A stretch of 64,000 nt of DNA from Macrostomum lignano. Its lineage: Eukaryota. The stretch spans positions 186,001-250,000 of the forward strand of contig NIVC01000124.1 of NCBI GenBank assembly GCA_002269645.1, given 5' to 3'. Shown here piece by piece: positions 53,446-57,989 of this stretch (positions are counted from its first letter, which is position 1; each line of letters opens with the position of its first letter). The position numbers and the translations under genes are program-made. The notes under the pieces are model-generated. The model was not told the origin of the DNA. It saw only the letters and a program-made list of their open reading frames with translations, and searched no databases.

Positions 53446-56400
53446 TCAGTGCCTGATAAGCCTCACAGTGAAACAGGCAATGGCGGCCAGAGCAAAGACC
53501 TGACAGGCTGACAAAGACCCCAGCTGACTGGCCGACTTGTACCAATCGTCTGGGGGGCAGTTATTGCCCCATCCGACACTGACTCCGTTCTCCTTGTTCT
53601 TGGCCGCAATGTAGGTCAGGAGCGGTGCGAAGTAGTCAAGCAGGGGTTTGGCGCTGATCTGCCGTGTGCCGCTAATCTTGAACAGGGCCTCCTCCCAGTG
53701 CAGTGAGGTGCCGCTCTCCAGCAGGGCTCTGAAAGTTTGTTTGGTAATAATATAAACATCAAAATATGAACTTAATCTCGTAATAACTTCACCTGTAGCT
53801 AATTGATGCTAATTACACGTGTACCTGATGCTAATTACACCTGTACCTAAAATTTATGCTAATTACACCTGTGCCTAATTGACGCTAATTACACATGTAC
53901 ATAACTGATGCTAATTTGCATGTACCTAATTGATGCTAATTACACATGTAGCTAATTGAGGCTAATTACACGCGTTACCTGAAATTGATGCTAATTACAC
54001 CTGTACCTAATTGATGCTAATTACACATGTACCTAATTGATGCTAATTACACATGTACCTAATTGATGCTAATTACACCTGTACCTAATTGATGCTAATT
54101 ACACCTGTACCTAATTGATGCTAATTACACCTTTAGCTAATTGATGCTGGATGCTGCTAGCGGATGTTAATTGCGACTATTTCGACTTTTGTGGTAAAAA
54201 TTAAAAGTTCAAAAATAGACAGATTTTATTTGCAACTGAACATTTAATAACTGTTTTAAGGGGCATTCAAAAATTCGGTTTTTTCACAAAAAAAATTCGA
54301 CCCGCACTCACTTGAGCTTTGCGCCGGCGGCAGAGTTGCCGTAGATGCTGCATTTGTGAAAATTTTCCGTTACACCTGCGGCCTGGCACAGCGACTGGTG
54401 GAATTGAAACTGCAGCAGTAGGCTGAGAAAGTATCTGAAAATTATTCAAACTTTTTTATCAGCTAAAAATTTGTAGGCTTGGCAACAAGTGAAGATAACA
54501 AACATTTGACCGAGTGCTATACCCTAGTTAGAAGGTATTTCGAGTTGATAGAATTTGTTTAACATTTTCAAAATGACTTTTAACTGTCTTTTATCAAAGT
54601 TTTTTCGTCTAATTTGAAAACTCTGCCATGCTCGTACAGACCGTGGCAACGACACACGAAACCTGGCTATTTTAATTACTCAATTCTTGCATGAACCAAG
54701 TTTCTAGCAGAATTATTCTCACAATTAACATCGAATATTATGAGACATGAATGTCATGTAATGCGGCAGTAATGTCTTAAAACATATTTTTTTTAAATTA
54801 CACATGTAATTAACGTACAATTTTGTGTTTCAAATTGGCGCCAAATTTATTGTTTAAAGCCATAATAAAGCCACCTGACCTCGCCTCATGTACTCCACAT
54901 TGGCAACCACGTGATAAATAGCGCCGGCATCGAAGTCCTCTTCCGATCGCAACACCGGACTGGAAACCCCCATCAGTTGGCAGCGCTGGTTCACCCATTC
55001 GCTGTTCCACTGATTCTTGGGCACCTCGCCTTTGAACAGCTTGTACCTGTAGGTTTGTCGATGGTGTAAGTAGGCAGAGGTATACAAATTCTCCACAAGA
55101 TTCTTCTTCTCGGGATTCCCTCCCCAAGACACCCATCGCCGAGATTCCCCGATCCGGAACTTCCTTTCCCGAGTTTTCCCTTCCTGAAATTAAACCTTCC
55201 CGGGATTCCCTTCTCGGGATTCCCCTTCTCGGCATTCCCCTTCCCGGATTCCCCTTCCCGGATTCCCCATCCCGGATTTCCCTTTCCGGATTCCCCTTCC
55301 CGGATTCCCCATCCCGGATTTCCCTTTCCGGATTCCCCTTCCCGGATTTCCCTTCCCGGGATTCCCCTTCTTGGGATTCCCCTTCTTGAGATTCCCCTTC
55401 TTAGGATTCTCCTTCCCGGGATTCCCCTTCCCCGGATTCCCCTTCCCGGGATTCCCCTTCCCGGGATTCCCCTTCCCGGGATTCCCCTTCCCGGGATTCC
55501 CCTTCCCGGGATTCCCCTTCCCGGGATTCCCCTTACCGGGATTCCCCTTACCAGGATTCCCCTTACCGGGATTCCCCTTACCGGGATTTCCCTTACCGGG
55601 ATTCCCCTTACCGGGATTCCCCTTACCAGGATTCTCCTTACCGGGATTCCCATTCCCGTGATTCCCCCTGCTGAGTTTTCCCATCCCGAGATTCTCTTCT
55701 TGAAAATCTCTCTCCATAGCTTCTACCTGTAGTTGTCAATCAAATAACCAAAAGACAGGTAGGCGGCCTTCTTCAAAGCCATGAGGAACAGAGAGTTCAG
55801 GTAGAACTCATCGGATTCGCTGTCCGATTCAAGCAGGCCGAGTTTTCTCAGATGCCCCGGGGTCATGACTGACAGCTCGATGGTGTCGCCGATAGCCTCG
55901 TGAAAACCGGGATTGGCGCCGTCTCGGAACACCACCGGCTGCTTCTCGTACTGTTGAAAGTATTGAATGTGGCCCATCTCGTGATGAGTCACCGCCAAAT
56001 AGTGGCCGGTAATCTCCGTGCACTGCTTGATGCGGAAGTCGCCTTTATCAGTGTAGAAATCCCAAGCAGACACGTGGCAGACCATGTCAACTCCCGGCAG
56101 CTTCTCCAACACCGACTTCTCCCAGAAGGTGTCAGTCATGTTTCCCAAGCCGAGCGAGGCGAAGAAGTCTTGACTGGCTTCGAACATCTGTCTGACTGTC
56201 CAGTTCTGTTACGGGTTTCAAATGCAGACTCTTTATGCAAAATCTGACAGACAGACAGACAGACAGACAGACAGACAGACAGACAGACAGACAGAAAGAC
56301 AGGCAGACAGACAGACAGACAGACAGACAGAAGGACAGACAGAAGGACAGACAGACAGACAGACAGACAGACAGACAGACAGACAGACAGACAAACAGAC

Positions 56401-57989
56401 AGACACTAAGACAGACAGACAGACAGACACTAAGACAGACAGACAGACAGACAGACAGACAGGCAGACAGACAGACAGACAGACAGACAGACAGACAGAC
56501 AGACAGACAGACAGACAGACAGACAGACAGACACTAAGACAGATAGACAGACAGACAGACAGTCAGCCTCACCTTCTCCCTCATCACTTTGGTGACGTCG
56601 ATCTGCGGCTCATTGGGAAACGGTTTCGTGAACGGCTCCAAATCGTCCCAGCGTCCGCCCCACATGTGTCCGAGAATGTGTCCGGGAATGTGACCGGTCG
56701 GCGGGAAGATGCTAGCCGGGTATTTCTGCATCAAAGCGTGCCTCACATAGCCGTGCAGCTCCTTGTACAGCGGCAGCAGGCCGTTGAACAACTCGGCCAT
56801 AACCTGCTCGAAATCCTGGCCCTCCTTGGGCTCGTACCAGCTCTGCCAGTACTTGGCGAAATTCGCGTAGCCAGCCTTCCTAATCATCTCGTTTGCCAGA
56901 TCGACGTACTCCTCGTACATCTGCTTCACCGGCCTGCCGCTGGCGTCCCTCCAGCGAGACCACAGAGCCTTCTTGACCGCTTCGCTGACGTCAGGGCTGG
57001 CCATCAGGCTGACGACTTTAATGAATTGTGAATGAAGTTATTTGATAGCAAAATGAGACAGACAAACTCTGAATGTACTTTTAGAAATTTGATGGCTAGA
57101 AATCTTTTCAAAAGCGCGCACCTCGTGACAGGGGAATTGGCTCCCCGGTGTCTGGATGCTCCACGGTGGCTGTGCTCTCAATTCGAATCATATCGCTCCT
57201 CAGCTGACCGAACTGCAGGGGCGGGGAAAGCTGCCGTTTGTCGTTTGTCTGTCTGTCTGTCTGTCTGTCTGTCTGTCTGTCTGTCTGTCTTATTGTCTGT
57301 CTGTCTGTCTGTCTGTCTGTCTGTCTGTCTGTCTGTCTGTCTGTCTGTCTGTCTGTCTGTCTGTCTGTCCGTCTTAGTGTCTGTCTGTCTGTCTGTCTGT
57401 CTGTCTGTCTGTCTGTCTGTCTGTCTGTCTGTCTGTCTGTCTGTCTGTCTGTCTGTCTGTCTGTCTGTCTGTCTGTCTGTCTGTCTGTCTGTCTGTCTGT
57501 CTGTCTGTCTGTCTGTCTGTCTGTCTGTCTGTCAGTCTGTCTGTCTGTTTGTCTGTCTGTCTGTCTGTCTGTCTGTCTGTCTGTCTGTCTGTCTGTCTGT
57601 CTGTCTGTCTATCCATCCAGCCTCACCCGAGTCTGCTTGGCCTCATCAGTCACAATCGATGTCCCAATATCGGCAGCCTTGGTGAACATTCGCTTCAGCC
57701 GCTCGTTGCCCAGGTTGGCCCAGTCGAACAGCTTGTCCATCTCCTGCCGCTTGCCGAGCATGAACTGGCTCAGCTGCAGTCTGGCTGCCAGTTCGGCCAT
57801 CTTATTCTCCTGATTGATGTCCGTGTTGGACGCCCAGCTGGCTTCCACCACCTTGTTCAGGAGTATCCTGTGCTCCCCGCTGAACTGCTCAAACCATAAC
57901 GTTGCCTCCGTTACATTCGTACTCTTGCTGCCAGCCAGACTGACTGCTGCTAGAAGCAAACAGCTTAGCAGAAGAGATCTCCGCGTCAT
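53446..57989 (-). CDS. ACE: Single-domain angiotensin-converting-enzyme-like zinc metallopeptidase (M2 family), 647 aa, 7 exons
   Basis: Exons 57989-57627, 57212-57122, 57015-56573, 56205-55727, 55046-54885, 54434-54312, 53728-53446 (1944 nt). Signal peptide [20 protein letters not shown]; HEMGH; [12 protein letters not shown]; QFQFHQSLC; hydrophobic C-terminal tail. Intron 5 requires a GC donor. Confidence 0.95.
53790..54145. repeat. 26-bp minisatellite (CTAATTGATGCTAATTACACCTGTAC)n in ACE intron 6
   Basis: Period 26. Confidence 0.92.
55100..55700. repeat. 15-bp minisatellite (CGGGATTCCCCTTCC)n in ACE intron 4
   Basis: 5-aa periodic ORFs. Confidence 0.95.
56245..56560. repeat. (GACA)n microsatellite in ACE intron 3
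   Basis: Seen directly; CACTAA interruptions. Confidence 0.98.
57245..57610. repeat. (CTGT)n microsatellite in ACE intron 1, inverted relative to the intron 3 tract
   Basis: Seen directly; TTAGTG interruption near 57375. Confidence 0.98.

Follow-up and report, generated by a model that had tools for sequence, protein, structure and literature searches.

Complementary microsatellites in introns 1 and 3 of a tandemly duplicated ACE gene of the flatworm Macrostomum lignano, a permissive splicing geometry that probably arose by chance

Introduction

When two complementary microsatellites lie on either side of a pair of exons, do they shape how the transcript is spliced, or are they what chance leaves behind where tandem repeats are dense? 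The question is raised by a 64,000-nucleotide (nt) stretch of Macrostomum lignano DNA (hereafter the window; NIVC01000124.1:186001-250000, assembly GCA_002269645.1), the minus strand of which carries a Peptidase_M2/ACE gene with seven exons. Exons 2 and 3 of this gene are bracketed by a (GACA)n array in intron 1 and a (CUGU)n array in intron 3, and a preliminary description of the window had proposed that pairing between the two could favor either a circle of exons 2 and 3 or the skipping of both exons. Here we examine the arrays, their predicted pairing, the reading frame of the bracketed exons, the annotated products, and the gene copies and repeats that surround them. The geometry is permissive in prediction, the functional reading is without support beyond that geometry, and the layout is probably a neutral inverted pair of microsatellites in a gene whose main product is linear mRNA, possibly accompanied by low-level by-products.

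Inverted intronic repeats promote back-splicing, for which 30 to 40 nt are said to suffice (PMC8586232), and inverted Alu pairs promote exon skipping by looping out in humans (PMC13019027). Circular RNAs (circRNAs) that lack a stop codon, such as circ-E-Cad and circEGFR, are translatable by rolling circle (PMC11263353), and planarian ADARs edit mRNA and suppress the response to double-stranded RNA (dsRNA) (PMC8797187). The type of layout described here is thus already known, and the locus is a new instance of it. A literature search turned up neither a study of circRNAs in M. lignano nor one in which microsatellite pairs drive back-splicing.

Results

The arrays were called with Tandem Repeats Finder (TRF) and placed in the gene by means of a GT-AG exon model (Table 1). 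Read in the sense of the RNA, intron 1 opens with 16 nt, continues with 365 nt of (GACA)n, and closes with 33 nt; the corresponding lengths in intron 3 are 6 to 10 nt, 321 nt of (CUGU)n, and 40 nt. The arrays therefore fill 88% and 87% of their introns, which without them would measure about 50 nt each. The intron 1 array is 97.5% pure and the intron 3 array 94% pure, and the two lie 680 nt apart within one transcript in opposite orientation. The exon 2 acceptor is 33 nt beyond the end of the intron 1 array; on the other side, TRF begins the intron 3 array 6 nt past the exon 3 donor, with perfect CUGU units from +11. These measurements bear out the distances of about 30 and 12 nt that were first given, as well as the claim that complementary microsatellites bracket exons 2 and 3.

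The identity of the gene as ACE, also part of the preliminary description, was confirmed. Residues 24 to 459 of the exon 1-4 product match Pfam PF01401 (E = 2.6e-138), and the window codes for the exact sequence of UniRef A0A1I8I4W8, the M. lignano angiotensin-converting enzyme (P0001 in our numbering), which is recovered exactly from the seven-exon model with introns 1 to 6 of 414, 106, 367, 680, 459, and 583 nt. Residues 24 to 606 of P0001 align to solved human ACE structures with E values down to 1.6e-285, and both the zinc motif HHEMGH (55986..55969) and the glutamate motif HEAIGD are encoded in exon 4. Measured against this model, the exon and intron coordinates first proposed are accurate to within a few nucleotides and their phases are right. 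At the exon 5/6 boundary (54894 region), P0001 reads ...VANVEY/FLSL... and the P0002 model reads otherwise, a mismatch that suggests alternative donor use or a difference of annotation.

Pairing between the two arrays is predicted to be extensive. Without gaps, they are 91 to 94% complementary over about 300 to 330 nt in essentially any 4-nt register, stretches of 321 to 332 nt are 90 to 93% complementary, and RNAduplex assigns the pairing of the intron 1 array with the intron 3 array an energy of -610.9 kcal/mol. Folded singly, the arrays reach only -0.7 and -4.0 kcal/mol, so that pairing between the introns is favored over pairing within either of them. The minimum free energy (MFE) fold of a 1441-nt stretch (-864.9 kcal/mol) contains 307 predicted pairs between introns 1 and 3, in good agreement with the duplex of about 300 bp originally envisaged, and neither array has another partner inside the transcript. 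The complementarity itself follows from the presence of one motif in opposite orientations, an outcome to be expected in 1 of 2 cases. At its intron 1 end, the predicted duplex stops 33 nt from the exon 2 acceptor, about 5 to 10 nt from the one region that could plausibly hold the branch site (ACAAAC and, after it, a pyrimidine tract), and in intron 3 it starts 6 to 10 nt past the exon 3 donor.

Two smaller features of the MFE fold were also observed. One is an 8-bp helix between the tail of intron 3 (56224-56231) and the final 8 nt of exon 1 (57636-57629). The other lies in the array-free intron 2, where a short UGUCUGUCU seed (about 57049-57067) pairs with the intron 1 array at its 3' end. 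Both the exon 1/intron 3 helix and the pairing of the intron 2 UGUCUGUCU seed involve GACA-like sequence and may be chance matches. An Rfam scan of the window returned no known structured RNA.

The interruptions of the arrays might have told whether the two arms evolved together, since the duplex had been described as having complementary interruptions. That description holds in that the arms share a variant unit and fails in that their variants are not matched by position. In the GACA sense, the variant units are aaca, gact, ctaagacg, and ataa in intron 1 and gaaa, ggca, gaag (twice), aaca, ctaa (three times), ggca, and gata in intron 3. Their order differs between the arms, no pairing register stands out, and a comparison of variant order and registers revealed no compensatory or position-matched changes between the two arms. 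The shared unit, CTAA, is three substitutions away from GACA, and each of the four gene copies described below has it in the intron 1 array, the intron 3 array, or both. CTAA was seen in all nine GACA-family arrays examined for interruptions, among them an unlinked array of the same window (40069-40774). Because CTAA is present there as well, it is a trait of the repeat family and not evidence of co-evolution of the arms, and its distance of three substitutions from GACA suggests a common origin of the dispersed arrays or sequence exchange among them. Compensatory interruption was rejected on these grounds: the order differs, any 4-nt register gives 91 to 94% complementarity, and the CTAA unit is family-wide. 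In the gene copy designated A, the pattern "aaca 2 ctaa 6" is repeated three times, indicating duplication within the array.

Exons 2 and 3 together measure 91 + 443 = 534 nt, or 178 codons, and the introns on their outer sides are both in phase 0. In a circle made of the two exons, frame 0 would contain eight AUGs and no stop, and the other two frames nine and five stops. Counting thus upholds what had been noted of this frame, and a circle, if formed, would indeed have an endless open reading frame (ORF). This property exists because the phase-symmetric exon block is the ancestral structure of the gene. A join of exon 1 to exon 4 would likewise be in frame, as had been foreseen for a skip, with the loss of residues 122 to 299 (178 amino acids [aa]) and the retention of HHEMGH. 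The lost residues align to a large part of the catalytic domain in solved ACE structures, and for this reason the product of skipping would probably not fold.

The annotated products are uniformly linear. All nine protein models (294 to 865 aa) read ...EAKQTR/FGQLRS... across exons 1 and 2 and ...VMREK/NWTVRQ... across exons 3 and 4; they are members of two 90%-identity clusters and are models from genome annotation, none of them derived from transcripts. None of the nine, which are gene models and not reads, lacks residues 122 to 299 or contains a skip or a repeated exon block. Given their origin in genome annotation, these models cannot exclude a circle. A search of 5.8 billion proteins, which included no dedicated search for the junction peptide, found no relative composed of exons 1 and 4 only among its top hits.

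Comparison of gene copies revealed how far the layout extends. Three tandem ACE copies lie on the contig, on one strand and 15.5 and 24.6 kb apart, and a fourth (copy D) lies on contig NIVC01002700.1. In all four, intron 1 carries (GACA)n and intron 3 carries (CTGT)n, with intron 1/intron 3 array lengths of 309/485, 701/189, 365/321 (the window copy), and 454/373 nt, and each has its own interruption pattern. The ORF is intact in at least three of the four. Across exon 2, intron 2, and exon 3, the copies are only 0.5 to 1.7% divergent, so the layout that they share is inherited and is uninformative on selection. Two older paralogs of 55% (P0003) and 53% (P0005) identity share these intron positions exactly or nearly so (protein positions about 121/122, about 151, and 299/300), and GACA/CTGT arrays are absent from both: the introns of P0005 are short and unique, and those of P0003 hold other repeat families. 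Among these four copies and two paralogs of M. lignano, then, the opposed arrays are not conserved beyond recent duplicates. Conservation was accordingly rejected as evidence of function, the copies being so close and the older paralogs free of arrays.

Two further observations concern the annotation of these copies. The NCBI gene model BOX15_Mlig017954g1 spans all three tandem copies over 44.7 kb, and its protein exactly matches no single copy, which makes it look chimeric. Copy D has a 1-nt deletion (L005, about 11061-11506), modelled in exon 3, that leaves exon 2-intron 2-exon 3 at 639 nt instead of 640 nt, and its annotated product, PAA55845.1 (294 aa), changes frame after ...PASIF; the copy is either a young pseudogene or the site of an assembly indel.

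The arrays lie in a region dense with others like them. Of the window, 43% is tandem repeat, a share that reaches 45% over the 108-kb contiguous region. Within the ACE gene, minisatellites occupy 70% of intron 4 and 62% of intron 6, and arrays fill most of four of the six introns. In about 208 kb of M. lignano DNA, neighboring arrays of the same family numbered two independent direct cases and two independent inverted ones, and this tiny sample gives no hint of a bias in orientation. The second inverted pair consists of 15-mer arrays in the 8-kb intron 1 of P0003 (L002 13196-13547 and 14534-14856; also L003), about 1 kb apart with a GA-rich core between them.

Upstream of the window copy, a (TCAG)n array and an ACE exon-1-like fragment (Table 1) belong to the duplicated unit and lie outside the transcript, and behind this head-to-head fragment the 15-mer minisatellite of ACE intron 4 recurs in direct orientation (58608-59332). 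At the same position, copies B and D have a divergent and longer ACE paralog that lies on the other strand (34 to 58% identity), full-length at copy D (L005) and detected only in its exon 1 region at copy B. Three satellite families, a 20-mer (TGACTGTGAGTGTGATGGAG) and 28-mers (GGCGCCTTCTGACTC... and CAACTGAGGATCTGG...), recur in matching order to either side of the gene (43396-50256 and 59809-64000) and mark a duplication unit of about 16 kb. Elsewhere in the window, the plus strand encodes ribosomal protein L3 (PF00297; about 22490-23861) and UFD1 (PF03152/PF24842; about 25055-26170), the latter as a single ORF of 371 codons.

Table 1. Coordinates of the ACE gene, its arrays, and related features. 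Positions are those of the window unless L001 or L005 is named.
Feature	Position	Strand	Details
ACE exon 1	57989..57627	-	363 nt; ATG at 57989; phase 0 end; tblastn 100% to P0001 residues 1-121
Intron 1	57626..57213	-	414 nt; GTGAGG...TGCAG
(TGTC)n array on + strand, (GACA)n in RNA	57246-57610	- (gene sense)	365 nt; 91 units; 95% matches; score 667
ACE exon 2	57212..57122	-	91 nt; GT-AG model and tblastn
Intron 2	57121..57016	-	106 nt; without array
ACE exon 3	57015..56573	-	443 nt; phase 0 end; GT-AG model and tblastn
Intron 3	56572..56206	-	367 nt; GTGAGG...AACAG
(GACA)n array on + strand, (CUGU)n in RNA	56246-56566	- (gene sense)	321 nt; 80 units; 88% matches; score 509
ACE exon 4	56205..55727	-	HHEMGH and HEAIGD; Pfam PF01401
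15-mer minisatellite, intron 4	55195-55667		TRF
ACE exon 5	55046..54894	-	GT-AG model
ACE exon 6	54434..54312	-	GT-AG model
26-mer minisatellite, intron 6	53790-54148		TRF
ACE exon 7	53728..53446	-	GT-AG model
(TCAG)n array	58213-58435	+	TRF
ACE exon-1-like fragment	58445-58567	+	59% identical to P0001 residues 80-120; head-to-head with the ACE gene
Unlinked third GACA-family array	40069-40774	+ (AGAC)	707 nt; six CTAA units; control for family trait
Tandem ACE copy	L001 10001-14470
Tandem ACE copy	L001 34662-39424
Tandem ACE copy, window	L001 50172-54712		Window 57989-53449
ACE copy D	L005 10001-13203

Discussion

Our findings favor the view that the opposed arrays around exons 2 and 3 are a neutral pair, with linear mRNA as the main product of the gene, and we consider this probable. 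Both arrays would be members of one (GACA)n microsatellite family that expanded within two introns that had started out very short (about 50 nt), in an ACE paralog that is young and has been amplified in tandem; their opposite orientation would have arisen by chance, and the layout would then have been duplicated together with the gene. Linear splicing is expected to predominate because the short intron 1 could already be gone when transcription reaches the intron 3 array, 0.7 to 1.0 kb further on. In those transcripts that still retain intron 1, the duplex would loop out exons 2 and 3, a state that may yield a low-level exon 2-3 circle or exon 1-exon 4 skip, or may just slow splicing, and pairing near the branch-site region and the donor may hinder the sites that back-splicing needs. 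The presence of an inverted array pair would imply no selected function. The predicted geometry is permissive, with its long duplex, its lack of an intra-intron competitor, and its canonical splice sites; the indirect evidence leans away from a selected or major role and toward chance.

Several points weigh against the neutral reading. A duplex of about 300 bp that is free of intra-intron competition is close to an ideal geometry for back-splicing, compared with the 30 to 40 nt mentioned above (PMC8586232), so that by-products could be plentiful. Circles would go unseen in gene models derived from poly(A)+ transcriptomes. The background of about 208 kb is partly duplicated and is far too small to speak for random orientation genome-wide, and the removal of intron 1 before intron 3 appears is something we infer from kinetics.

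The same duplex could be put to other uses, and these were weighed against the neutral reading. It might serve as a brake or a source of dsRNA, slowing or blocking the removal of introns 1 and 3 and lowering ACE output through nuclear retention, ADAR editing, or dicing into small RNAs. Long, near-perfect dsRNA is predicted beside both inner splice sites and flatworm ADARs exist, on evidence that is planarian and not from M. lignano (PMC8797187), but the gene has persisted in four copies, at least three of them with intact ORFs, and we regard such an effect as unlikely. Efficient back-splicing of exon 3 to exon 2, with the arrays acting in the manner of inverted Alus to give a 534-nt circRNA whose endless ORF might be translated by rolling circle, seems quite unlikely. 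In its favor are the 307-bp predicted duplex without intra-intron competitor, the canonical GT-AG sites on both sides, the eight AUGs and absence of stops in the frame of the circle, and the fact that back-splicing by inverted repeats (PMC8586232) and translation of stop-less circles (PMC11263353) are both established elsewhere. However, we found no literature on circRNAs of M. lignano, the layout is unconserved beyond duplicates that differ by less than 2%, and the frame property stems from ancestral phase-0 introns common to array-free paralogs; the circle would have no known internal ribosome entry signal, and the duplex abuts both the branch-site/polypyrimidine region of intron 1 and the donor of intron 3, which it could block. 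A more ambitious form of the idea holds that opposed microsatellites are length-tunable circularization elements in a genome whose introns are filled mainly by simple repeats instead of transposons, so that paralog arrays of 189 to 701 nt would set the ratio of linear product to a 534-nt circle translated by rolling circle; we view this as a long shot.

Skipping by loop-out, in which the exon 1 donor would be brought beside the exon 4 acceptor to yield an in-frame mRNA lacking residues 122 to 299, would draw on the same predicted duplex, with the loop closed by the 8-bp exon 1/intron 3 helix of the MFE fold, and has a precedent in the inverted Alu pairs of humans (PMC13019027). None of the nine annotated models lacks exons 2 and 3, however, no relative built of exons 1 and 4 only appeared among the top hits from 5.8 billion proteins, and the loss of 178 residues, a large part of the catalytic domain, would probably prevent folding; we find this outcome very improbable. 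That the layout is a palindromic chimera or a collapsed repeat is hardly credible, even though assembling long microsatellites is difficult and the M. lignano assembly as published is fragmented (PMC5730564). The layout recurs in four separately assembled copies on two contigs with differing array lengths and interruptions, and the unique exons between the arrays are correctly oriented and encode the annotated protein exactly. An assembly artefact was rejected on the strength of these four independent copies.

Comparison with known systems places the locus among them without making it identical to any. As in inverted-Alu circRNA loci, complementary introns bracket an exon block with canonical splice sites, and the predicted duplex far exceeds 30 to 40 nt with no intra-intron competition (PMC8586232). 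Unlike inverted Alus, the arms are pure tetranucleotide microsatellites and not transposon copies, which allows pairing to slide to any 4-nt register, and they take up nearly all of two very short introns, right up against the splice signals. The resemblance to Alu loop-out skipping (PMC13019027) lies in an inverted pair that flanks internal exons, a predicted stable stem-loop, and an in-frame skip. In the present case, by contrast, two exons and a third intron would be looped out, no skipped isoform is found among the annotated models, and the host, a flatworm, has short introns and uses spliced-leader trans-splicing. The hypothetical 534-nt circle is like circ-E-Cad and circEGFR (PMC11263353) in that its length is divisible by 3 and its frame contains AUGs but no stop; unlike them, its stop-less frame is purely arithmetic, following from phase-0 introns common to repeat-free paralogs. 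The arrays themselves resemble the ordinary intronic and intergenic arrays of M. lignano in type, in fast length change, and in internal higher-order duplication, and they differ from these in that two of one family are opposed 680 nt apart in one transcript.

Were the arrays to act in back-splicing, plain microsatellites could do the job ascribed to inverted Alus, and fast change in array length could tune circular versus linear output among near-identical copies. Because M. lignano can be made transgenic, a role in back-splicing is testable. The tandem arrangement of the copies means that a read-through transcript in which exon 3 of one copy is spliced to exon 2 of its neighbor would carry what looks like a back-splice junction, and the triplication would thereby yield false back-splice signals and confound an assay with divergent primers. 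What the locus mainly shows is that chance inverted arrays of the same motif around exons are to be expected where about 40% of the local sequence is tandem repeat, and that the frame-preserving geometry of an endless ORF follows from ordinary phase-0 introns.

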